Assembly: GCF_036588685.1 (NCBI RefSeq)
Contig: NC_086377.1
Location: 10,354,001-10,418,000, forward strand
Reading direction: 5' to 3'
Length of the DNA stretch: 64,000 nucleotides
Origin: Mytilus trossulus
Lineage: Eukaryota
Shown: in pieces, positions 1 to 64,000 of the stretch
Layout: each line of letters opens with the position of its first letter
Position numbering within the stretch: position 1 is the first letter of the stretch
The notes under the pieces: generated by a model
Told to the model about the DNA's origin: nothing
Seen by the model: the letters and a program-made list of their open reading frames with translations, nothing else
Databases searched by the model: none
Translations under genes and position numbers: made by a program

Positions 1-2136
1 AAATTAAACAGCATGTGATATTGAAAATTGTATCTGATATTTATTTTTATTAAATGGGAAAATATATATAAAAACAAATTCGTCCCTCTTGTATCCTTTA
101 TTTTATGTTATAAGTGTATAGTGTACGTATACACATTCATGGTACTGTTTTGTTCTAAAATGATACAACCAATTTTAAGGAGCCACTTTATCTATTATAT
201 GAGAATTGATATGGCATTTTGATGTAGCAACATTTTTTTTACATTATTTAAAACATTATGTTATACGGTAAATCTTGCATCTTGTGTTTCATTTTTGCAT
301 TTCATATAGTATGTTATTTTAATTCACAATTGGCGATTCGTACTTATTTATCTTTGATTATAACTAACTTACGTCAACTTGTTTTAGGATGAAAACACCA
401 AAGTGTCTTTCGAAAGTCTTGGTGTATAAAAACAAAAATCACATAAATTATGCAATTCATAATAGAAGTTGTTTGATGTAATGTTGTTATTAAAATAGCT
501 AGGCAATACAATACACACACCCTTTAAATAATGTCACACAGACGTGCGTTACAACTACAAAAGAGTCGGAAGATTTAGAGTATCGTTAAAATGGTATAAC
601 CAGAAATGTTTTAAGCCAATGACATGTGATAACCGGAACAGTTGAAATATTATACCATAAAAAGCATAAGTGAAACAAGTTTACTCAACCTCAGTTCAAC
701 TTACCTTTTGTGGGGTGCAACCTTAGTTCTCAAATGATTTCTTACTTTATAAAGCGACACGTTTAATTCATACACATACTGTTTATCACATTCCAATGTT
801 TGCCATGCTTGATTTATATACTAATTCAATAATGAGACTTCAAAATATTCTACTATCACAACTACCTATGGTATTATTATATTGTCGTTGTTATCTCTCT
901 TTGCTAAATTGTATGCTGTTTTCTGTGGTTAGATTTCTATAAGTTGTCCCTCAAGTTAGTGTAAAGTTAGGCAAACAAATAGGTATGGACATTAGTAATT
1001 TATAATATAAGGTTTTGTTAAAATGGTAGTAGTAGACTATGAGATTATTAAAAAATCATATTAACTTAATGTTGTATCTCAGACAGGTTCGTCTACAAGG
1101 AGACAATGCCATGACAAACAGCAGTATACACAAAAACAAAATCAATATTTTGAGTCATGTTTTATAGCGAAGCGGAACAAATCAGATATTTTCAATTCTT
1201 GAGTTTGACTGTCCCTCTGGTACCTTTCAGCCCTCTTTCATGGATTATACTGCATGAGAGACACTGAAAGCAGAGATGGTGAAATTAAAAAAAGTTTAAC
1301 AACAAATTTATTTGGAGAACTGTTTTAACATATCAACATACTTAAAAATGGTTAAATCAACTCAAGGTCAACTTTATTCGTTTTAGAATTATAATTCAAT
1401 ATTATGCTGTATTTAGTGATTATTTTTTTAATTTTTCAGCGGGTAAGTGTCAAGTAGCAAACAGATAAGTATAGAAAACAATTATATATGCAAGTTATAA
1501 TATAACGATAGTTATACAATGGCGTTAGCAGAGTAGTAAAGTTAAACAATAAACATACTAGTACCATTTTATGAAGAAAATTAGTTTAGAAGTGTTTTAA
1601 ATAAAATTGAGAATGAACATTTGTTAGTAGATAACCATTGTCTGTGTTCTGTTTTTTTTAAAACCCCTTTTATAAAGATTAAAAGTAATATCACAGCGTT
1701 TGTGTTCTTAAATAACAACTCTCAGCTTTTCAAATATGAGAATAAATTGATTAGATTACTTCCGTTTTGAATTTTACCCGAAGTTCAGTATTTATATGAG
1801 TTTACTGTTTGTTAAGTGATTAGACATGATAAGATATTCAAGACTGAGTTTTTAAAGATTGAGCCATGTGCTTGTTTATGTGTACAGCCAGTGTTTTGTA
1901 AACATATGTTGAAAAGAATGTCAGCAATTCTGTATGTTTTGAATTTCCATAATTATTCTGTCTATCAAAAAAAGCAAAACACTTTAAAAATTCAAAACGC
2001 CCGAAGCGCTTATGTTGATAAAAGTACCGTGCACTTGACGAAGCGGAACAAGTCAGACATAATAAGTTCAGATTTTTTGCTACAGTACTATGATTGCTAT
2101 ATGATTACCATAAGCATCATATAAAGAAAACACATA
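1..2136 (+). repeat. Segmental duplication, paralogous to 62119-64000 (tandem gene-scale repeat, ~62 kb offset)
   Basis: Near-continuous direct match by eye, e.g. aaaacagcatgtgatattgaaaattg at 6 and 62124. This copy has an extra ~240 bp around 1580-1818. ORF-track peptides 1816-2124 and 63766-63987 are also similar. Confidence 0.95.
1440..1442 (+). CDS. 3-nt microexon (CGG) of upstream TRIM-like paralog
   Basis: tttttcAG|cgg|GTAAGTgtcaagtagcaaacagataagta; positional paralog of 63542-63544. Confidence 0.75.
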
Positions 2137-2917
2137 CAGAGTTGATGCTATTATGATTTGTTTTGTCTCAAATAAAGGCAACAATAGTATACTGCTGTTC
2201 GAAATTAATAAATTGATAGAGACAGAAAAATACAAATCTGGGTTATAAACTAAAGCTGAGTGAAACGTATCAAATATAAGAGAACTACGTTACAACAGAA
2301 ACTCAACACTAAAATGTAACACACACAGAAACGAACTATACAGTAACAATGGCCATTTTCCCGACTTTGTAAAAGGCATTCTATGAAATAATGGTGGGTT
2401 AAACCTGTTTTTGTGGCATGTCAAACCTCCCGTTTTAATGGTAATGTTAATAATAACATTAAAATGACAACATTACACGACAGGGCTACAATAAATAAAT
2501 CGAAGAAAAATAGGACAGAGAAACAAACGAATAATAGCCATCAAAGGGTACCAGGTTATAAATAAATGTATACGTCAGACGTGCGTTACGTCCTCACAAA
2601 AACTATGCTCAGATGAAAAAAGTTTGAAAGCCAAAACAAGTACAGAGTACAAGAGCGATACACGGTTTGAACAGTCATTTACTTTTTTGGGGGACATAGT
2701 CATATTAACAACTTGGTTTGTCATTTTGTTTTATATTTAAGCATCGTTTAAGTAGCGACAATATTCACACAGTTTCATCTAAGCAACAAACAAGCAATTT
2801 AAAGCAATATTTAAAAATTAGCAAATTGATAACTGATGTTTTGAGAAGATATTTTATGTGTATCTGGATTTTGAAAAGTTTTTCCTTAGATTTCAAACTT
2901 TTTTTTATATTTTTCAG

Positions 2918-2923
2918 TTATCG
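2918..2923 (+). CDS. 6-nt microexon (TTATCG; encodes Y-R) of upstream paralog
   Basis: ttttcAG|ttatcg|GTAAGTgttatgtaacagataagtat; in phase 2 gives Y-R immediately before the CSC exon. Confidence 0.72.
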
Positions 2924-3352
2924 GTAAGTGTTATGTAACAGATAAGTATATAGTGATAAGTTTACCAAACAAAAAGAATGAATAGACATCATATAGCGAA
3001 TTGTGTGTGTGGAATTTAAAGAATGGGAAAATATAAGCCAGTTCCAAAAAAAAAGCATTATTATATAAATGTTATAAGAAGCCAGGCGATGTTTTGAATT
3101 CTGTTTTTTTTTAAGAATAATATCAGATAGTGATGATTACACATATTCCATAATTTTCTCCAATACTTGTGTATTGTGACTTATATTAGAACGTTCATAT
3201 CTTAAGCTTTAAATCCAATGAATATCTTATGTTTCATCATTAAATAACTATACATTTATTTTAACTGTTGAACCAGTTAACGCAAAGTTTAATAAGGATG
3301 TCCGAGCGACATGTTTTATATAATTAAGTGTTGTTTTTTTCTCTCATTGTAG

Positions 3353-3367
3353 ATGTTCATGTGGCGG
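3353..3367 (+). CDS. 15-nt exon encoding C-S-C-G-G (second Cys pair of putative Zn ribbon), upstream paralog
   Basis: ttttttctctcattgtAG|atgttcatgtggcgg|GTAAGTactgcagataaa; phase 2-2. Confidence 0.72.
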
Positions 3368-4481
3368 GTAAGTACTGCAGATAAAACATACAATCCATAT
3401 TGCTCTTTGATGACTTTAAGTTCATAGTATGAATTCGTCATACAACGACGTAAAGATTAAAGTATTTATTTAGTTTATCAATTAAATTAAATATGACATG
3501 CGTATTATTGTTTTATTCTTCCATTTAGCATATGATAGGCATTACTTCATGTTATTATGAGTATGTGCATATCACAAGTGAACAGCCTGTAATTCACATA
3601 TTTGTTTTTTTCGTTTTGAACAAAAATTAGGCCGTTAGTCTCTTGTTTTACATTTGTCATTTCGGGGCTCGTTGTTAAAGAAGGTTATGTGACTTATAAT
3701 TTTTTTGTCATTCGGTTTCTCTTGGAGAATTGTCTCGTTTAAAAATCAAACCACATATTCTATGTTATTTTTGCTGCAGAAAAATCTTTTCACTTGCGTT
3801 TCATAGAGACACGATAGAAGACGAATGACATACTTTATGTTTACAAATATATTCTTTAGAAAGACACTTTTCTAATTGTTAAGTTAGTTTTAATGGCTGG
3901 CCTGGCATAATTTGTGTCCATTTAAAACGATTGGTAAGTTATTGTACTTGATATCTACTCACTGAACAAAGAACATTTCAACGTATAAAGTATAAATATA
4001 AGCTATAAAAATCAATAATATACAGAACTAACATGTACTGTTAAAAGGTATCTTAAATACAACTTGAGCAATGGAGTACGATATTCAACATATCGGAAGC
4101 TTTGACTTGTATGAGTTTTGTACAATAAAAACCGAATGTCAACATCAAAACCTACTATTTATCTAGTCAAATCATGACCAAATGCAAGAGCAAGCAACGG
4201 AACTAACATGAACAACAGTCACTCCTGGTTTAGTTAGTATATCAACCAATTAGTCATTAAATAGTTTCAACCAACCACGTCAGGACTAAAAGACGAACAA
4301 TAATTTAGCAAAACATGCACACATTGTTTAGTTTCATGAAGAATAAACCAATTGCAATCAAATCGCATAGAGTACAAATAACAACAAATTTATACTAGTA
4401 CGATTATTTTGGAATGATATAATGTAATTATAGTGCATACATTATAATGATAATATTTGTCCATGGTATTCATGTTTTCAG

Positions 4482-4509
4482 AACTGTGAGGTATATTAGA
4501 GAATTGTAA
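4482..4509 (+). CDS. Putative terminal coding exon (G)TVRYIREL* of upstream paralog
   Basis: gttttcAG|a ACT GTG AGG TAT ATT AGA GAA TTG TAA in phase 2; AATAAA at 4755-4760. An internal donor AG|GTATAT at 4491 (9-nt exon) is an alternative. Confidence 0.6.
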
Positions 4510-7500
4510 AGAGACAGTCTGTAACAACCATTTGCCAGACAAAGAAACAGAAGTAGAAATGTATTTCATTCTAAACTGAAGAACCTAATGTTTTTTTTTT
4601 GTGTATGTACATATTTTGTTATTGATATAATTGTTGATTATAGCTACGAGTACAATAATCTTCGCAAAAAGTTAACCAAAATATTGTTTCTGTAAGGAGT
4701 AGTTTTATCATTATCCAAGTCATGTATAGAGTTTAAAGCCCAACAAATGTTTTAAATAAACTATCAAAACTCCAGAATATAAGTTTTTCGGGCTTCTGAT
4801 TTCAACATCAACATTGTTTGTTTACTCTGAGGGATCATACAAAGGTTAAACTAACAAACATCTGTCAGGGAAACATGTAGTGAACATATAAATATATCAT
4901 GGTGTTCATGATATAAAGATTCAATGATACGTTGCTTTTAGTGACTGGCGAACAAAACACGGTACTGTGGCTTCACCTTGGCGACATAAGCGTGGTTTAA
5001 TGTGACAAAACGATTACATAACGGTCAACGTTATCAACAGCCCGTCAATTTACCTTTTAAGATAGGAGTCCATCATAATAATTAGGATAATTCTGCTCAA
5101 AAGCTTCATTTCAAGCAGCAACATAAACTGAGTAATGACAGAAGAAAAATACAACTCCAGGAAAATGGTTTATAAACAAAGATTTCAGTTATTGCTTGGA
5201 TATTTTATTGAAATAGCTGAATGATGAACATTTAAGGATTGTTGCATACAAATACTATTATTCAGTTTTTGTTCTTTTCTTATCTGATTGGCGAATGATA
5301 TCCTTGGATTTGTTTTTATTCCTGAATGTGCAGTGTGTTCTGCGTACTTAGACACTTCTGTATGTAACTACATATAAATGACACATTGGTTATTATAAGA
5401 GAAGGATGTTCTGGAAAACTGATTGAAGTAAACCTGATCATGATTTGTGGTTGTCTTATATGTTCAGGAACATGGCATGAGTATCGAAATAAAAGTAGAC
5501 TATGTTATTCATGTTCCAATCATATCATTAAAAGTCTTAAAAAGTAAATCACTATTAATTCAATAATTCTTATATGATTTGCATGTCTGCAAATACATGT
5601 AATTTGTTTTTTCTATGGTCGGGTTGTTGTCTCTTTGACAAATTCCCCATTTCCATTCTCAATTTGTTTTAATACTTGCATCAGATTAGTCTGTTAGAAT
5701 TATGTTCCCTTTGTTTATTATAAGAAAAGGACGTTCTGGAAAACTAATTGAAGTAAACCTGATCATGATTTGTGGTTGTCTAATATGCTCAGGAACATGG
5801 CATGATTATCGAAATAATAGTAGAATATGTCATTCATATTAAAATCATATCATCAAAAGTATAAAAGTAAATAACTTATAGTTCAATAATTCTTATATGA
5901 TTTGCATGTCAACAAATTTATGTTATACTTATTATCATAATAGTCTGTTAGAATTATGTTGCCTTTGTTTACATTTCGATCCACCATGTTGCTGTAGAGT
6001 CTGTCGTACCTTCAATGTTCATGCGAGAAAGTTATACATAAGATCAAAAAGATCCAACTTAATTGAATATGTAATTAAGATACTAGCAATAATGATGATA
6101 ATAATTATATATGTATAATTATTATACCAGCAATAATGATGACAATAATCATATTCCTCATTCTAAGCACATACTTGAAAATCCAATGAAAATGAAACAG
6201 AATTCAAATTATCAGAAGTGGTGTATGCTTCATTAAGCAACCGATCATTCATCAACACACTAATAGGTAGGTGGTACGGGTGTCTTTTGTTATCTTGTAA
6301 GAGTCTCAAATTTCAGGTCTATCTAACGAAAGATTTTGGACACTTTTTAAACACTTCAGTGTCTTTCTTGATTGATCTTAGTTTATGTGAAAGATTTTAA
6401 CTGATTCACCGATGCAGACTTAGATATGAAAACAAAAAATGTCACTTTTCAGATGATTTTTGTCAAAAATAAAAGTGATCGCATCCGTGTTCATCCCAAA
6501 CCTTTATATATGCAATGTTTTATCATCATAACATGGCATAGTTCATTATTAAGAATGAACACAAATGCAACCAATTTTTATTTGAGACGGAAACCGTCTA
6601 AAATTTAACTAAATTACTAAAATTGTGACGATTTCAGTTATTAAGCAGGACTTAATGAGGCTAGTACCCGATATATTGGCATTTTATTGTCAAAAATAGC
6701 CCATATTTATATAGCAGATGCCTTGTTACTTTCCAAGAAGTAACTAATAATTTACATTTTCATAATTTTGCCAGATGGACGACTATATTGCATATGTTTT
6801 TAATGGCTTTTTGATGACCTTAAATCTTACTGTCAATTCCTGTTAAGAGTACAGGTGGATAGTTGTCTCATCTGGTATAATTCTTAATCGCCGTATTTTA
6901 TATGAAAAACTAATCAATGATTATCATATCAAAGCAGGAACCATCCTCCAATTTTGCGGGGAGAAATAGGTAATGTATCAGCCCTTAACTTTTTGTAGTA
7001 CGGATCATGCTTATTCAGTTTATATATTTTTTTTGATTATTTAAATATGACATGTACTTAGTGATGTCCATTACCAGATTACATAAATTCCTGGACAGAC
7101 ATATTTTCATATTTATAGAGTAGCAAATCATTGTAATACTTTGATTTGGTAAAATAAATAATGATTAAAGGTTAGAAGGTACAAGTTTGCTATTGTTCCC
7201 TGAACAATTCTTACCCTACTGCATAAGTGCAAAATGCACACCATATGGTTCAGAAGTCTAGAACTATTTGCAGGTTTTAAGTCCAATGAATTTAAAGATC
7301 TTACATCTTTATGTCTTTGATGTGTTAAAGGAGATTGTTGTAGTAATGTCGCTACACTTTTATTGTGTGGAAAGAATCCATTCTATATTAACCTATAATA
7401 CAGAATAGAATAGAATAGAATGGAATATTTGTATTTCCCAATTTACAGGGCATATACAGGGCATAAAATCAGATACAACTGATTTACATAATTGGTAACA

Positions 7501-39476: not shown

Positions 39477-40243
39477 ATGGCACAGGCAGCCTCTAAAACA
39501 TGTGAGATATGTATAAGTGCTCCAGGATCCCAATACTGTTTGGAGTGTGAACAAAACTTTTGTGAAAATTGTAAAACTTTTCATAGTAGGCAGAAGATAT
39601 CAAAAACTCACCAGTTCCAGTCTTCCTCTGATGTAATCCCGGAGGGTAAATCGAAATGTAAGGACCACAATGAAGACTTCAGTTTTGTATGCAAAACATG
39701 TGACGTAGTAGTGTGCAGTAGTTGTGTGACTGGCAGTCACACAGGGCATGCTTTTTCCAAGCTTCTGGACAGCATTAAACAGTTAAAGGAGAAGAACACA
39801 ACATACCTACGTATAAGAGTACAACAGTCAACACAAAACATGAAGCAGATAGAAAAAGGTATAAAGGAATTTGATGTCAAGGTGGAAGGAGTAGTCAAAG
39901 CTATTACAAAAGAAGGTACACAACTCAAGGCTATGGTTGATAAATGTGTTGCAGAGATGATTTCATCGGTCAATGATCAATCTAGGAGAGAAAAGGACAA
40001 ATTGACAAAGATCATGGCAGATACTAGAATGGATTTGAAGGCAGGAAGCAATTTAGACATGCAGATTGATGAACTCGACAAGATCAGAAACGATGGTAAT
40101 TTGTTACAGTCTTTACAGAAGCTTACAGATGACAATGCAAAGCTGACGATAAAGCCAATTCCCGAGTTTCCGAACATAAGGTATACTGCGAAGTCCGCAA
40201 CAGATAACGACGTTAAACAACTGTTTGGTAACTACATACTCAG
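39477..40243 (+). CDS. RING-less TRIM-like protein, coding exon 1 (B-box1, B-box2, coiled-coil)
   Basis: CEIC..CLEC..CENC..H..H and CKDH..CKTC..CSSC..HTGH followed by a helical heptad region; donor ctcAG|GTAATT in phase 2. Confidence 0.93.
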
Positions 40244-40475
40244 GTAATTCTACTAAAAATGACTGACAATTTTGTGGGCGTAATACATGCTTTAATATAA
40301 CCATAGTATCTAAATGAGACACGCTTTTTTTTTGCGAAATAAAAATTATGTTGTATTCTGAAATATAAACTTATGTCTTGAAATAATATGACAGACGAAG
40401 GAGTGATAATTCATGAAATACAAATATGCGTTCATTACACATCTATTGTTTAATATTATGGATTCAACATGTGAT

Positions 40476-42164
40476 GAAACCAAATTTCTTGGTTTACTTT
40501 TCGATAAAAAGTTAACCTTTCTACCCCATATCAAAATGTTAAAAGCGAGATGTTTAAAAGCTTTAGATATTTTAAAAGTTGTCGGCAGCACTGACTGGGG
40601 TGCTGATCGCAACATTTTACTTAATTTATATAGATCTCTTGTTAGATCGAAACTAGATTATGGCTCTATAGTGTATGGCTCTGCAAGGAAGTCCTACATA
40701 CAGATTCTCGATGCTGTGCATCACCAAGGTTTGCGTCTCTGTCTTGGCGCATTTAAAACCTCACCAGTTGAGAGTCTGTATGTAGAGGCTGATGAGCACT
40801 CACTCACTGACAGACGTTTGAAGCTTGGACTTCAATATGCTGTCAAACTAAAAGCCCATTCAGATAATCCTGCCTACAGCTGTGTTTTTAATCCGATTTA
40901 TGAAGATATTTTTGCAAAACATGAAAATAAAATTCCTCCGTTAGGTTTACGTTTAAAACCACATTTAGCTTCTTTTGATTTAAAATCTGTTGCTCAAGTT
41001 CAAACTTGCAAATGTCCTCCATGGGAACTTCCCAAACCAAAAATGATATTTGATCTCCGTGAACACAATAAAAATAAAACAAATCCTCTTTTAATTCAGC
41101 AACACTATGCTGAAATTAAAGCCGATTATCTAGATTTTTCAACTGTATATACTGATGGATCAAAAGATGGTGATAGAGTTGCATCTGCTGCTGTCTTCAG
41201 GGACAGAGCTGCAACCCTCCGTTTACCATCTGATGCATCCATCTTTACTGCTGAAGCAGAAGCAATAATTTTGGCTTTGAAATTTATTGCTTCTTCAGAT
41301 AAATCCAAATTTATTATATGTTCGGATTCACTTTCATGTTTACAAGCTATACGAAATACTAAAATTAAAAACCCAACAATCCTGAAAATTTTATATGTAA
41401 TGAGGAATTTAAAAATTCTTCTGAAAGAAATAATATTTTTATGGGTTCCGAGTCATGTTGGAATCCTTGGAAACACAGCTGTAGACCTTGAGGCAAAGAA
41501 TGCCCTGGGTGACCCTCTATCTAACTGTGATATACCATATACTGATTTTAAATCTAATATTAGAGAATATGTTTTTAATATATTGAAAAATAAATGGAGT
41601 AAAAAAGATGATAATAAATTGCATGAAATTAAACCTAGTTTAGGCAAACCTTTTGATAATATTATGTGCAGAAAAGATCAGTGTGTTATTACTAGATGTC
41701 GTATTGGTCATACTAGAATAACACACGAGTATCTTTTAAAAAATGAAGATGAACCACAATGTGTTCCTTGCAACTGCAAGTATACTATTAAACATGTTTT
41801 AATTAATTGTATTGACTTTGCTGATATTCGTAAGAAGCATTTCAATGTCAATAATATGTATGATTTATTTAATGATGTTCCATTTACAAATATTGTTGCT
41901 TTTTTAAAAGAAATTGGAATTTATTATAAAATATAAAAATGTTATTATATTTAAATCGATTTTAATTTTTATCACGTTATTTTACTGTTGATTTTTAATT
42001 GTATATACTCAATTTGCTTTAGTCAATAATTTTAGTATACTGAAGGACTTTTTGTCTTATTTTAAAATATGCTTTAAATTGTAAAAATATTCGAATTAGC
42101 TCTCGCCGCGATATAGCCTTTTTGTGCTAATGCGGCGTAAAGCAACCAACAATCAATCAATCAA
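40476..42164 (+). mobile_element. 5'-truncated I-group (Nimb/I-like) LINE, copy 1, in intron 1
   Basis: ORF with end of RT region, RNase H (YTDGSK..AEAEAI..SDSLS..WVPSHVGILGN..D) and CxxC..H..C knuckle; (TCAA)n tail; 12-bp TSD TCAACATGTGAT (40464-40475, 42165-42176). Confidence 0.95.
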
Positions 42165-48205: not shown

Positions 48206-48271
48206 TGATTACAAACAGGATGTGATACCAAAGGAGCAAGGAAAATGCCTGTACAGATGTGTCAAGTGTCG
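48206..48271 (+). CDS. TRIM-like gene exon 3 (66 nt; DYKQDVIPKEQGKCLYRCVKC, first Cys pair)
   Basis: tgttgcttattatAG ... tgtCG|GTAAGT; open, phase 2-2. Confidence 0.82.
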
Positions 48272-48906
48272 GTAAGTTTATTATTATTGTTTCTATGGAC
48301 ATGACACAGAATTGTACATCTATATCATGTGTCGTATCAAATGTATAATTTCAAAGTGTCAATGAAGTGCAAAATACATGGGTCTTTTATCTCGAAAAAT
48401 GCAACAGGTGTCATGTGTAATTGGCTTGCGCCACACAGATGTTTGGACTGTTTAAGAAATCAATAAGAAACATCGATGAACAAACCAATAAGAGTGATAT
48501 AGAGCAGCATTATATCTGTTAACTTGTAAATAATTTACACAAATGTAATGAGCAACATAGTTTCGTCTTCGTCGGCAGTGATGTAAATGGATGTATAATA
48601 ATAATACTAGACGCCATATTTTGGTACTCATATTTAATCACTCATAGGGCGCATTTGGTGGTTTGATACTAAATCATTCACGGGTATTTTGCATGATTTG
48701 CATGATTTGCATAATATGGAGAATATAAAAAAAAAATGTGGTATGATTGCCAATGAGACAACTATCCACAAAAGACCTAAAAGAAATTCATTTTTAATCA
48801 GTTAAGATGTGGTCTAGAGCTCGCATGCATGTCAGTAACTGTCTTTGTTGATATACGCATCAATGCCATTTTGCATAGGTTTTTTTAGTTACCTTTTCTG
48901 ACATCA

Positions 48907-50656: not shown

Positions 50657-53574
50657 TGTAGGCAAGCCCGACGAACATCCTGGAAAAAATTTGTCTCGGG
50701 GATTACATCTCGCACTCCGATGACAAAAGTTTGGAATATGGTAAATAAAATAAAAGGTAAAAATTCTAAAGCCACTGTAAAACATTTGAAAGACGGCAAT
50801 ACTTTATTAACATCTGAAAAGGATATTGCCAACAAACTTGGTGAAACTTTTGCAAAGTCTTCTTCTTGTAACAACTACAGGGAAGACTTTAAAAAAGTTA
50901 AAAAACAAAAAGAAAAAATTAAATTAAACTTTAAATCAAAAAATGGTGAAAATTATAATAAACTATTTTCTCTTGAAGAACTTAAAACATCTCTGTCAAA
51001 AGCCCATGATACAGCTTGTGGGCCTGATAATATTCACTACCAACTCTTAAAACACTTGCCAGATTCCTCGCTAGAAGCTCTCTTGCAGCTCATGAATAAC
51101 ATCTGGGAATCTGGTGATTTACCATCAATCTGGAAGCTTGCAACCGTCGTGCCTATTCCAAAACCAAGTAAAGATCATACGGATCCTATTAATTATCGAC
51201 CAATTGCTCTTACCAGTTGTGTCTGTAAAACACTCGAACGGATGGTCAATGATCGACTTGTTTGGTTCCTGGAATCCAATGGGCTATTAGCCAATATCCA
51301 GTGTGGATTCCGACAGGGTCGCAGTACTCTTGATCATCTTGTTCGATTCGAATCATTTGTCCGTAATGGTTTTGCGAAAAATGAGCATGTGGTGTCGGTC
51401 TTTTTCGACCTTGAGAAGGCCTATGATACTGCATGGAAATATGGTATTTTAAAAGATTTATTTGATATGGGGTTGAAAGGCAATATGCCTAATTTTATTT
51501 CTAATTTTCTCTCTAACAGACAATTTAATGTTAGAGTTTATCGACCATGTCTGATCTGTATGATCAAGAGATGGGTGTCCCTCAGGGCAGTATTTTATCT
51601 GTAACATTATTTAGTCTTAAAATTAACAGCCTTGTTGAAGTTTTAAAAAGTAATATTGAAGGTTCATTGTACGTTGATGATTTTTTAATATGTTACAGAG
51701 GCAAAAATATGAATAACATAGAAAGACAATTACAACTATGTCTTGGAAGAATTGAAAAATGGGCCTCGGAAAATGGTTTTAAATTTTCCACGTCAAAAAC
51801 GGTCGGGATGCATTTTTGTAACAAAAGAAAATTGCATCTTGATCCAGAACTAACTTTGTACGGCAACCCAATTAAAATGGTTGATGAAACCAAATTTCTT
51901 GGTTTACTTTTCGATAAAAAGTTAACCTTTCTACCCCATATCAAAATGTTAAAAGCGAGATGTTTAAAAGCTTTAGATATTTTAAAAGTTGTCGGCAGCA
52001 CTGACTGGGGTGCTGATCGCAACATTTTACTTAATTTGTATAGATCTCTTGTTAGATCGAAACTAGATTATGGCTCTATAGTGTATGGCTCTGCAAGGAA
52101 GTCCTACATACAGATTCTCGATGCTGTGCATCACCAAGGTTTGCGTCTCTGTCTTGGCGCATTTAAAACCTCACCAGTTGAGAGTCTGTATGTAGAGGCT
52201 GATGAGCACTCACTCACTGACAGACGTTTGAAGCTTGGACTTCAATATGCTGTCAAACTAAAAGCCCATTCAGATAATCCTGCCTAAAGCTGTGTTTTTA
52301 ATCCGATTTATGAAGATATTTTTGCAAAACATGAAAATAAAATTCCTCCTTTAGGTTTACGTTTAAAACCACATTTAGCTTCTTTTGATTTAAAATCTGT
52401 TGCTCAAGTTCAAACTTGCAAATGTCCTCCATGGGAACTTCCCAAACCAAAAATGATATTTGATCTCCGTGAACACAATAAAAATAAAACAAATCCTCTT
52501 TTAATTCAGCAACACTATGCTGAAATTAAAGCCGATTATCTAGATTTTTCAACTGTATATACTGATGGATCAAAAGATGGTGATAGAGTTGCATCTGCTG
52601 CTGTCTTCAGGGACAGAGCTGCAACCCTCCGTTTACCATCTGATGCGTCCATCTTTACTGCTGAAGCAGAAGCAATAATTTTGGCTTTGAAATTTATTGC
52701 TTCTTCAGATAAATCCAAATTTATTATATGTTCGGATTCACTTTCATGTTTACAAGCTATACGAAATACTAAAATTAAAAACCCAACAATCCTGAAAATT
52801 TTATATGTAATGAGGAATTTAAAAATTCTTCTGAAAGAAATAATATTTTTATGGGTTCCGAGTCATGTTGGAATCCTTGGAAACACAGCTGTAGACCTTG
52901 AGGCAAAGAATGCCCTGGGTTACCCTCTATCTAACTGTGATATACCATATACTGATTTTAAATCTAATATTAGAGAATATGTTTTTAATATATTGAAAAA
53001 TAAATGGAGTAAAAAAGATGATAATAAATTGCATGAAATTAAACCTAGTTTAGGCAAACCTTTTGATAATATTATGTGCAGAAAAGATCAGTGTGTTATT
53101 ACTAGATGTCGTATTGGTCATACTAGAATAACACACGAGTATCTTTTAAAAAATGAAGATGAACCACAATGTGTTCCTTGCAACTGCAAGTATACTATTA
53201 AACATGTTTTAATTAATTGTATTGACTTTGCTGATATTCGTAAGAAGCATTTCAATGTCAATAATATGTATGATTTATTTAATGATGTTCCATTTACAAA
53301 TATTGTTGCTTTTTTAAAAGAAATTGGAATTTATTATAAAATATAAAAATGTTATTATATTTAAATCGATTTTAATTTTTATCACGTTATTTTACTGTTG
53401 ATTTTTATTTGTATATACTCAATTTGCTTTAGTCAATAATTTTAGTATATTGAAGGACTTTTTGTCTTATTTTAAAATATGCTTTAAATTGTAAAAATAT
53501 TCGAATTAGCTCTCGCCGCGATATAGCCTTTTTGTGCTAATGCGGCGTAAAGCAACCAACAATCAATCAATCAA
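50657..53574 (+). mobile_element. 5'-truncated I-group LINE, copy 2, in intron 3 (frameshift plus premature stop)
   Basis: RT motifs (YRPIALTS, QCGFR, FFDLEKAYD, GVPQGS, YVDD), RNase H, knuckle; frameshift near 51540; TAA at 52285-52287; (TCAA)n tail; 12-bp TSD TCATATTTAAAA (50645-50656, 53575-53586). Confidence 0.95.
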
Positions 53575-53960: not shown

Positions 53961-53981
53961 AAAGGAAATGAGAACTGATAT
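53961..53981 (+). CDS. TRIM-like gene exon 4 (21 nt; (R)KEMRTD)
   Basis: tctgtttcatctttcAG|a AAG GAA ATG AGA ACT GAT AT|GTAAGT; phase 2-2. Confidence 0.8.
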
Positions 53982-60861: not shown

Positions 60862-62064
60862 GTAAGTTTTAAGTAGAAAACAGATAAGTATAGCGTACAT
60901 TTACATAGACAATTTATAATGTAAGGCTTTTGATGCAATGGTGGTGGTAACATAGTTAAGTAAAACAATAATCCCACAACTTACATGACGTATCTCAGAT
61001 GCACGCTCCATCTTTAAAGAGGAGGAAGATAATAGAGAGACATTCAAAATCATTAGTAAAATGTAAACTAAACAAATACCATGGCAAAAATATAAAGAGA
61101 CAAACAACAGTAAAAAAAAACCCCAAAAGACAAGGTAATTTTAGAGACGATGAAAGCCAATACAGTTTTAAATAAAAATAGAGAACATACACATAACTGG
61201 TTGAACTATCACTAGGACAACTTTTTTTGAGGATGTTAGTTAAGAGTCTAGGGTTAACGTTTGTTACATATCCGATAATTTGTCAAACCTTCATAGGATT
61301 GTCTTGAAAACTTTGGCAGAAGATATTTATGATTCAGAAATAAGGTTTTTAAAATATATGTTCATTTGCAGTCTTTTTCTTATAGATGGTTTTGAATTAA
61401 TTTAGTTTTACTTGCAATATTTTTAAACCTGCATTAATTTTTATGAAACTTGGGCTTTATTAATACTGTATAATATCGTTTTGTATACAATGTGAAATAT
61501 CTGATAAATCCATAAATGAACTCATCATAGATAGTTATTAAAACTTTGCTTATCAGATAGTCTTTGTTGTTAGTGTTTTATCGTAAATAATCCAATTCTA
61601 AGGTTTTTTTTCTCGCCAATTAATATATTACAGAGTGACGTAATTGATAAAAGTAAGAACTCGTTTGTATTGGTTTTTTCTAATTTGATTGTTATATAAT
61701 TAACAACTGGATACCATAGAATAAAAAAACATACAGAAGTATTTTGTTATCATGATTGTTATAATTTCATAATATATAATCAATGAGGTTTCAATATCCA
61801 TTTACAATTATTATGGGAGAAAAATATTCATTTTTATCATTTAATTTGCTTTTTATTTGTATATTTTTACTTTTTTGTGATAGCTCTCACATTTAGGAAA
61901 CTACAGTATCTTCTAAATATGATTAACATTTCCAGACAAAATGCTGAACTTAATATGCACAAGTAAAACGTTGTATCTGATGTTTTTAGATGAGTATTTT
62001 CCCTTTCGTTGTTCTCTCAAACTATTCATTCGATCTTAATTGAATGTATATTTCTTTTTTTCAG

Positions 62065-62070
62065 GGGCAT
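62065..62070 (+). CDS. 6-nt microexon GGGCAT
   Basis: tttctttttttcAG|gggcat|GTAAGTaccaaccatataagtat. Confidence 0.7.
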
Positions 62071-62118
62071 GTAAGTACCAACCATATAAGTATGTTGTGA
62101 TAAGTTTAAACAAAATAA

Positions 62119-64000
62119 AAAATAAAACAGCATGTGATATTGAAAATTGCATCTGATATTTTAGTAAATGGGAAAATATATTAAAAAAAAGTTCGTCCCT
62201 CTTTTATCCTTTAGTTTATGGTATAAGTGTATAGTGTACGTACACACATTCATGGTACTGTTTTGTTCTAAAATGATACAACCCATTTTAAGGAGCCACG
62301 TTATATATTATATGAGAATTGATATGGCATTTTGATGAAGCAACATTTTTTTACATTATTTAAAACGTTATGTTATACAGTAAATCTTGCATCTTGTGTT
62401 TCATTTAGGTACTTTATATAGTATGTTATTTTAATTCACAATTGTCGATTCGTACTTATTTATCTTTGATTATAACTACCCTACGTCAACTTGTTTTAGG
62501 ATGAAAACACCAAAGTGTCTTTCGAAAGTCTTGGTGTATAAAAACAAAAATCACATAAATTATGCAATTCATAATAGAAGTTGTTTGATGTAATGTTGTT
62601 ATTAAAATAGCTAGGCAATACAATACACATACCATTTAAATAATGTCACACAGACGTGCATAACGACTACAAAAGAGTCGGAAGATTTAGAGTATCGTTA
62701 AAAATTGTAAAACCAGAAATGTTTTAAGCCAATGACATATGATAACCGGAACAGTTGAAATATTAGACCATAAAAAGCATAAGTGAAACAAGTTTACTCA
62801 ACCTCAGTTCAACTTAACTTTTGTGTGGTGCAACCTTAGTTCTCAAATGATTTCTAAATCTATAAAGCGACACGTTTAATTCATACACATACTGTTTATC
62901 ACATTCCAATGTTTGCCATGCTTGATTTATATACTAATTCAATAATGAGACTTAAAAATAATCTACTATCACAACTACCTATGGTATTCTTATATTGTCG
63001 TTGTTATCTCTCTTTGCTAAATTGTATGCTGTTTTCTGTGGTTATATTTTTATAAGTTGTCCCTCAAGTTAGTGTCAAGTTAGGCAAACACATAGGTATG
63101 GACATTAGTAATTTATAATATAAGGTTTTGTTAAAATGGTAGTAGTCGACTATTAGATTAATAAAAAAAATCATATCAACTTAATGTTGTATCTCAGACA
63201 GGTTCGTCTACAAGGAGGCAATGCCATGACAAACAGCAGTATACACAAAAACAAAATCAGCATTTTGAGTCATGCGTTATAGCGGAGCGAAATAAATCAG
63301 ACATTTTCAGTTTGACTGTCTGGTACCTTTCAGCCCTCTTTCATAGATTATACTGCATAAGAGATACTGAAAGCAAGGATAGTGAAAGCCAAAAATTATA
63401 AAAACAAATGTATTTGAAGAACTACATTAACATATCAACATATATAAAAATGGTTAAATCAACTCAAAGTCAACGTTATTCGTTTTTGAATAATAATTCA
63501 ATATTATGCTGTATTCAGTGATTATTTATTTATGTTTTCAGCAAGTAAGTGTCAAGTAGCAAACAGATAAGTATAGAAAACAATTATATATGCAATTTAT
63601 AATATAACGATAGTTATACAATGACGTCAGTAAAGCAGTAAAGTTAAACAATAAACACGTGTACTAGTACCATTTTATGAAAAGAAATATTTATATAAGA
63701 CATGATAAGATATTCGAGACAGAATTTTTAAAGCTGAGACGAATGTTTGTTTATGTGTACAGCCCGTGTTTTGTATACATATGTTGAAAAGAATGTCGGC
63801 AATTCTATACGTTTTGCATTTCCAAAATTATTCTGTCTTTCCAAAAAAGCATAACACTTTAAAAATTCAAAACGCCCAAAGCGCTTTTTGGGTTAAAGTA
63901 ACGTGCACTTTTACGAAGCGGATCAAGTCAGACATAATTTGTTCAGATTTTTTGCCACATTACAATGATTACCATAAGCATCATTGAAACAAAACACATA
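62119..64000 (+). repeat. Segmental duplication, paralogous to 1-2136
   Basis: Direct match to the window start. Confidence 0.95.
63542..63544 (+). CDS. 3-nt microexon CAA
   Basis: tgttttcAG|caa|GTAAGTgtcaagtagcaaacagataagtat; paralog of 1440-1442. Confidence 0.75.

Follow-up and report, generated by a model that had tools for sequence, protein, structure and literature searches.

A chain of four small exons at positions 1440-4509 of a 64,000-nucleotide stretch of Mytilus trossulus DNA (the window; G000:C5:10354001-10418000, on chromosome 5 of an AT-rich genome of 1.3 Gb with ~30% GC) is the real 3' end of the gene design of a tandemly repeated, TRIM-like protein family, and RefSeq models of sister genes share this ending. 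We consider it rather likely that the chain closes one particular member of this RING-less family, designated here as paralogue B, and that its product would end in a zinc-ribbon-like C-terminal mini-domain. The first-pass annotation of the window, made from its letters, had noticed four terminal exons at these places. This observation was confirmed, and the acceptors, the donors and the phase-2 reading agree with it. The exons and their immediate surroundings are the following:

1440-1442, plus strand: 3-base microexon CGG, phase 2, with tttttcag upstream and gtaagt downstream.
1443-1474, plus strand: intron module GTAAGTGTCAAGTAGCAAACAGATAAGTATAG, adjoining the donor and nearly invariant in 32 copies; repeat family D3.
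2918-2923, plus strand: 6-base microexon TTATCG, phase 2, G-Y-R with its neighbours; the same exon is present in the RefSeq model P0025.
3353-3367, plus strand: 15-base exon ATGTTCATGTGGCGG, phase 2, R-C-S-C-G-G, second cysteine pair.
4482-4509, plus strand: terminal coding exon AACTGTGAGGTATATTAGAGAATTGTAA, phase 2, G-T-V-R-Y-I-R-E-L, with TAA at 4507-4509.
4510-4590, plus strand: presumed 3' untranslated region with a conserved start (mean pairwise difference 0.101 in 21 copies).

Each of the four exons (3, 6, 15 and 28 bases) is preceded by a pyrimidine tract and AG, and the first three are followed by GTAAGT. Together they give the phase-2 reading (C)GYRCSCGGTVRYIREL-stop, that is, codon by codon, C-G-Y-R-C-S-C-G-G-T-V-R-Y-I-R-E-L-stop. 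The leading cysteine codon begins with TG of a CTG exon 58 bases before the window, and the CGG exon at 1440-1442 supplies its third base together with the first two bases of the glycine codon. The microexon pattern exceeds chance expectation: a strict search (pyrimidine tract ≥0.7, YAG, 3-30 bases in multiples of 3, GTAAGT) returned seven sites on the plus strand and none on the minus strand of the window, as compared to 0.35 ± 0.63 in 200 shuffles, and three of the seven are the CGG, TTATCG and 15-base exons (1440, 2918, 3353). An Rfam search of window positions 1-7000 gave no match.

The same ending is used by RefSeq models of sister genes. The protein P0025 (XP_063436120.1) ends in …YRCNKCG-DLDFFGYHG-YRCSCGG-FMSYIKEQ. 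At its locus (C5:8474001-8494000; acceptors YAG or AAG and donors GTRAG required), this tail can be threaded in a single way, through the exons CGA, CTT, GGACTT, CTT, CGG, TTATCA, CGG, TTATCG, the 15-base exon and the terminal exon, i.e., through five 3-base and three 6-base exons before the last two. As the model holds five 3-base exons, we infer that it was built from transcript alignments and not by ab initio prediction. It skips two candidate exons (a 21-base exon and CGT), which is no more than a hint of alternative use. The 15-base exon is present as well in P0015, ending in …GYRCSCGGLMGYVETS, and in P0019, ending in …YRCDKCG-MEERSDLLRRWELEC-CSCGG-LMDRVQ; furthermore, P0004 passes through …YRCSCGG. 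A word search with the P0025 tail region recovered five M. trossulus models only.

The heads of these proteins place them next to the TRIM family. The B-box exon of the window (exon 1) is 99% identical to a M. trossulus RefSeq protein. In Pfam, the stretch 39477-40244 matches PF00643 (E 2.2e-14, in two stretches) and PF22586 (E 3.4e-9), and these B-box matches are shared by the sister proteins; with the coiled coil PF25600 (E 6.2e-8), the matches of exon 1 comprise a B-box, an ANCHR-like B-box and a TRIM coiled coil. A structure search with the whole model of P0058, a family protein encoded on C11, effectively compared residues 92-247, which are the coiled coil. The helix of residues 94-200 matched the coiled coils of TRIM5alpha, TRIM25, KAP1 and TRIM3 with Z of 7.0-7.6, and TRIM72 was also matched (Z ~7). 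No RING family was found in Pfam at E ≤0.1, and the proteins start with MAQAASKTCEIC…, the methionine standing directly before B-box 1. In the absence of a RING finger they are therefore TRIM-like and not canonical TRIM E3 ligases. At least 45 family heads are located on C5 (8.1-11.8 Mb), at least 45 on C11 and more on C14, and at least 21 copies of the terminal exon were found.

The C11 subfamily, whose heads are ~49% identical to those on C5, shows the C-terminal module in a different exon layout. P0058 threads uniquely as exons of 66, 30, 27 and 28 bases, all in phase 2, and its C-terminus reads YGCTKCG-DEQIIQLHSLN-YECFMCGG-EMLYYEDV. A DNA search for the 27-base exon of this subfamily revealed one further copy only. 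Since the same domain is encoded on C11 in ordinary small exons, the C5 lineage appears to have split the loop into a chain of microexons, and the C11 layout appears to be the older arrangement.

Of the first-pass idea, the part best supported by the data is that the cysteines stay constant while the residues between the pairs and behind them change quickly. The microexons lie between two invariant pairs, and the divergence of the exons compares with that of their surroundings as follows:

3-base exon, 32 copies: site diversity 0.06/0.75/0.52; flanks 0.10-0.12.
6-base exon, 14 copies: mean pairwise difference 0.335; flanks 0.075 and 0.040.
15-base exon, 19 copies: mean pairwise difference 0.078; flanks 0.081 and 0.069.
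Terminal coding part, 21 copies: mean pairwise difference 0.322; intron 0.086, 3' flank 0.101.

The 3-base exon, the 6-base exon and the tail are thus ~3-4 times more divergent than the flanking introns. The cysteines stay fixed: the first pair is invariant in 33/33 aligned family proteins, and the second pair keeps its two TGT codons without exception in 29 aligned loci (19 distinct sequences), the 15-base exon changing only at silent sites and in the middle codon. The variable block of the terminal exon spans exactly the distance from the acceptor to the phase-2 stop, and 18 of the tails in 21 copies are distinct. Pooled pN and pS (proportions of nonsynonymous and synonymous differences) were 0.43 and 0.25 there (136 pairs); as the pairs are non-independent, these values are descriptive and not a formal test. 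The Y-R element, which had been expected in the downstream copy as well, is not conserved, the 6-base exon being variable.

Two further variants of the ending were seen among the paralogues on C5. A third, apparently intact paralogue at -30893..-21700 of the upstream extension (C5:10323100-10332300) has a very short loop and reads …LLKCDECG-KEKRSD-F-Y-Q-CSCGG-TFLLPFKEPV-stop, its terminal exon having wholly diverged from the family pattern. Six other paralogues (L014-L019) possess a second tandem terminal exon ~260 bases downstream with its own 'tttttag' acceptor (e.g., L014:1883), which in phase 2 reads G-L-M-G-Y-I-K-[EK]-Q-stop in five of the six. The tandem terminal exons may be alternative last exons.

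The design of the family is supported by four independent lines: its presence in RefSeq models, the unique threading of the P0025 tail, the constrained reading frame and the matching domain of the C11 subfamily. Each gene encodes two B-boxes, a coiled coil, a short linker and a C-terminal mini-domain of 35 to ~50 residues, the latter with all its exons in phase 2. The mini-domain consists of a first pair [YF]-x-C-x-x-C-G on the 66-base exon, a loop of variable length, a second pair C-x-C-G-G on the 15-base exon and an 8-residue tail on the terminal exon. On chromosome 5, the loop is made from 3-, 6-, 9- and 21-base exons, and every one of these has an acceptor, a GTAAGT donor and a conserved intron module of its own. 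Most likely, one zinc ion is held by the four cysteines within a zinc-ribbon-like fold (hairpin of the first pair, loop, second pair, strand), whose loop and tail would lie at the surface and vary. If the C-termini of other TRIM proteins are a guide, the mini-domain would be the target-recognition end of a coiled-coil dimer.

The window contains parts of two such genes. Its beginning had been described as a duplicate of its end (1-2136 versus 62119-64000). This duplication was confirmed and proved to be longer: -79..5200 aligns colinearly with 62044..67306 (81-92% identity), and both sides contain insertions. The downstream copy is the ending of the window's own gene, and the sequence beyond 64000, proposed as the place to look for the missing exons, indeed holds them:

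1-1586, plus strand: upstream member of the duplicated tail cassette, colinear with 62044-63692 (91.8% over 1673 bases); repeat families D13, D14 and D16.
48206-48271, plus strand: 66-base exon of the window's own gene with the first cysteine pair, …CLYRCVKC-R.
53961-53981, plus strand: 21-base exon of the window's own gene, K-E-M-R-T-D, start of the loop.
63542-63544, plus strand: 3-base exon CAA of the window's own gene, homologue of CGG at 1440-1442.
64297-64302, plus strand: 6-base exon TAGACA of the window's own gene, past the window end.
65393-65407, plus strand: 15-base exon ATGTATATGTGGAGG of the window's own gene, past the window end.
~66590, plus strand: terminal exon of the window's own gene, past the window end.

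The end of this gene reads …N-R-Q-C-I-C-G-G-Y-M-G-I-T-K-G-Q-stop (…NRQCICGGYMGITKGQ-stop). No NHL or SPRY exon was found in the 6 kb after the window end, and the next family head follows 25 kb further; a conventional NHL or SPRY domain in the downstream copy, which had been named as the outcome that would overturn the idea, is therefore not what follows the microexons. The composite domain that had been assembled, YRCVKCRKEMRTD…YRCSCGG, needs correction, because the exon at 48206-48271 and those at 1440-4509 belong to different genes, so that it joined the first pair of the window's own gene with the second pair of another.

The owner of 1440-4509 was sought in the 40 kb upstream of the window. 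Its candidate exons are listed here in window numbering:

-9126..-9043: first-knuckle exon of paralogue B, …GKFLFKCGKCG.
-8001..-7981: 21-base exon, homologue of 53961-53981.
-7007, -5347, -4423 and -3862: 3-base exons GAA, CGT, GCG and CGT, respectively.
-3020: 9-base exon.
-1523 and -58: exons GGAAAA and CTG, followed by the exons at 1440, 2918, 3353 and 4482.

The candidate chain of paralogue B comprises exons of 21, 3, 3, 3, 3, 9, 6, 3, 3, 6 and 15 bases, all in phase 2 and separated by introns of 0.4-1.7 kb. It is thus a run of frame-symmetric exons of ≤36 bases with long introns, comparable to the chain of a RefSeq sister. If every candidate exon is spliced in, the reading is …FKCGKCG-KEERIDKNVRVWYMENCG-YRCSCGG-TVRYIREL-stop.

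The design is real in the family, but the upstream copy has a rearranged head and may not be functional. There is an almost even chance, leaning towards the affirmative, that 1440-4509, although it looks intact, ends a gene that is decaying or dead, recently duplicated, with splice signals not yet lost, and we put the odds that paralogue B is not functional at slightly better than even. Several features count here against the picture of a working gene. Exon 1 of paralogue B is present in two copies; both B-boxes are kept in the heads, but one copy breaks within the coiled coil, after …NMEKIEG, and in the other residues 1-100 are fused to the last seven codons of exon 2. Coiled-coil coding sequence was not found between -12400 and -9200, and the heads of paralogue B lack the TRIM coiled coil. 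The first-knuckle exon has a GC donor (GG|GCGAGT) in place of GTAAGT, and the introns, with an identity of 88-99% to those of other copies, indicate a recent duplication or gene conversion. No protein with the paralogue B tail turned up in the searches made. Contigs of four runs (one recorded as RNA, three only guessed to be RNA) were colinear over the introns at low depth, showed no splice joints and left 4600-5400 uncovered; they neither favour nor refute splicing and give no expression support for paralogue B. On the other hand, consensus acceptors and donors are retained throughout the twelve candidate tail exons, as is an open phase-2 frame. The fusion in the second head copy is in frame and has not lost its donor, and exon 2, although diverged, is present with intact splice sites. 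GC-AG introns, moreover, are in low-frequency use in animals. Paralogue B may either be decaying or encode a short form that lacks the coiled coil.

In the same contigs, depth was very high at 1200-1400, 2000-2600 and 5604-5665 (up to ~60,000 at 5604-5665), with many different flanks. These stretches are common dispersed repeats of the introns and the 3' flank, outside the gene proper.

As to the mini-domain itself, the zinc ribbon proposed in the first-pass annotation is plausible but unproven: its basis is the motif, the AlphaFold strands and non-significant matches. From these, zinc-ribbon-like metal binding is predicted to be somewhat more probable than its absence. The four conserved cysteines form two knuckles in the contexts aromatic-x-C-x-x-C-G and aromatic-x-C-x(1-2)-C-G-G, and such aromatic-x-C…C-G contexts are typical of zinc knuckles and ribbons. 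AlphaFold2 with family alignments predicted strands at residues 293-297, 303-306 and 318-321 of P0025 and at residues 269-274, 280-284 and 298-304 of P0058, i.e., a hairpin around the first pair and a strand after the second one, with a predicted local distance difference test score (pLDDT) of 54-73 for the block. In a phmmer search of the PDB, the only proteins matching the tails were zinc-ribbon proteins: residues 295-322 of P0019 matched residues 5-32 of RNA polymerase subunit P/Rpo12 (E 0.071), and P0058 matched eS27 (E 0.78) and a Zn-ribbon RNA-binding protein (E 1.3).

This assignment is weakened by the fact that all these matches are non-significant (E 0.07-1.3) and that the P0025 tail had no PDB sequence match. 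In five full-length sister proteins, no Pfam family, zinc-ribbon families included, covers the tail at E ≤10, and the protein atlas gave for the tails scores of 0.82-0.84, within the noise range, or no usable match. In addition, the second pair is not uniformly spaced: CxC in this lineage stands beside CxxC in the C11 subfamily and CC in models from M. coruscus and M. californianus, and so much variation is unusual for a structural zinc site. One might thus think that the cysteine pairs bind no zinc and belong to a flexible peptide (a redox-sensitive, metal-buffering or interaction motif), the ribbon-like prediction arising from the CxxC pattern alone, and the varying spacing, the extra cysteines in some loops, the missing match to a curated zinc-ribbon family and a pLDDT of only 54-73 would fit this. 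We regard it as unlikely, as none of the four cysteine positions changes within the subfamily although the residues next to them vary freely, the knuckle contexts are of the zinc-binding type, and, in two subfamilies, either pair is flanked by predicted strands. Moreover, to judge from the B-boxes, the protein is probably intracellular, where disulfides would be unlikely. A zinc-clamped mini-domain is the preferred reading. Its comparison with a complementarity-determining region is no more than an analogy.

That the exons are read in another frame or are non-coding is very improbable: five RefSeq models (P0002, P0005, P0022, P0091 and P0103) do carry the 15-base and terminal exons in other frames, which speaks against phase 2, but only phase 2 stops at a constant place, after 8-9 codons in 21/21 paralogous terminal exons even across 1- and 4-base indels, whereas the other two phases run for 1-32 codons into conserved sequence past the hypervariable block, and in the distant C11 subfamily phase 2 likewise yields CxxCGG and a tail of eight residues. 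The frames of these five models (MFMWR-NCEVY…, DVHVA…) were rejected on account of the constant phase-2 stop, at which the hypervariable block exactly ends.

In many other RefSeq models, the reading runs through a donor and ends at the first pair. As many public models either stop there or misread the frame of the tail, protein databases lack most of the real C-termini of the family. All exons end in phase 2 with a donor G|TAAGT (e.g., 40241-40247, 48270-48275 and -24975 of the upstream extension), so that an unspliced transcript would be read for a single further codon before an in-frame TAA. Exactly this kind of donor read-through ends the public models of 256, 275 and 297 residues as well as P0023 (306 residues). 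Intron retention would yield a nested series of cleanly truncated proteins. A model of another kind is P0004 (402 aa), which runs from the CSCGG exon directly into an exon reading DACTRLTAVTEQELLKPK (compare -12180..-12123 of the upstream extension). The latter is a diverged exon 2 of a B-type truncated paralogue, which implies either that transcripts run on from one family member into the next or that the gene model is a merger.

The family resembles several known systems and differs from each of them. With TRIM/RBCC proteins, especially expanded and positively selected subsets such as the finTRIM proteins of fish (PMC2657112) and primate TRIM5, it shares the B-box, the antiparallel-type coiled coil, the large tandem expansions and the concentration of variation in the C-terminal part, which is target-recognising in other TRIM proteins. 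However, the exon-1 product has no RING, and the C-terminal module, a Cys4 peptide of 35 to ~50 residues made from microexons, does not correspond to any usual end domain of TRIM proteins (B30.2/SPRY, NHL, filamin or PHD-bromo). Such an extreme gene architecture is otherwise known mainly from the micro-exon genes (MEGs) of schistosomes, in which very short frame-symmetric exons (3-81 bases) are separated by long introns (PMC10526429) and the members are highly variable, as in the mussel family. In contrast, MEGs encode secreted, mostly disordered proteins almost wholly from microexons, whereas the mussel microexons fill only one loop of a probably intracellular multidomain protein, and each of them carries a conserved intron module, unlike those of MEGs. 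A literature search on microexons in Mytilus or bivalves revealed nothing relevant. Finally, the C4 zinc ribbons of Rpo12 and eS27 have, like the mussel tails, two aromatic-x-C-x-x-C-G knuckles 11-20 residues apart with flanking strands (predicted in the mussel), but the second knuckle of the C5 lineage is CxC, Pfam gives no zinc-ribbon match, and the PDB matches are non-significant.

The divergence of the exons, several-fold above that of the introns, points to selection for diversity, comparable to that on the B30.2 loops of antiviral TRIM proteins. If the zinc-clamped reading holds, mussel TRIM-like proteins would bear an undescribed C-terminal recognition module, a very small peptide clamped by its cysteines, in which each exposed residue has a 3- or 6-base exon to itself. 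One could go further and regard the family as a germline repertoire of intracellular recognition proteins, in which a zinc-clamped mini-scaffold displays a loop and a tail under diversifying selection, and in which microexons with near-identical intron modules let single residues be gained, lost, recombined between paralogues or chosen by splicing. This is a speculative and on balance quite unlikely proposal. If true, this would be an invertebrate route to binding-site diversity that was not described previously.

Some further observations concern the introns. Relatedness among the copies is mosaic: 1290-1600 is 99% identical to C5:8642631, and the same copy (L019) is 84% identical over 4420-4560, while the best matches to 4300-4700 sit in other copies. 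This suggests that paralogues have exchanged sequence across the conserved introns, by recombination or gene conversion. A decayed microexon module is located at 905-990 and 63020-63100, in both copies of the duplication. It retains the usual upstream 'tgtatgctgt…' context and a post-donor-like GTTAGTGTAAAGTTAGGCAAACAAATAGGTATGG, has GTTAGT for GTAAGT and lacks a clean acceptor; it is probably a dead microexon. In the window's own gene, the introns that separate exon 1 from the microexon array contain two reverse-transcriptase/RNase H retroelement copies (40413-41936 and 50720-53346), and these copies share 300-base stretches that are 100% identical (40472-40771 and 51882-52181).

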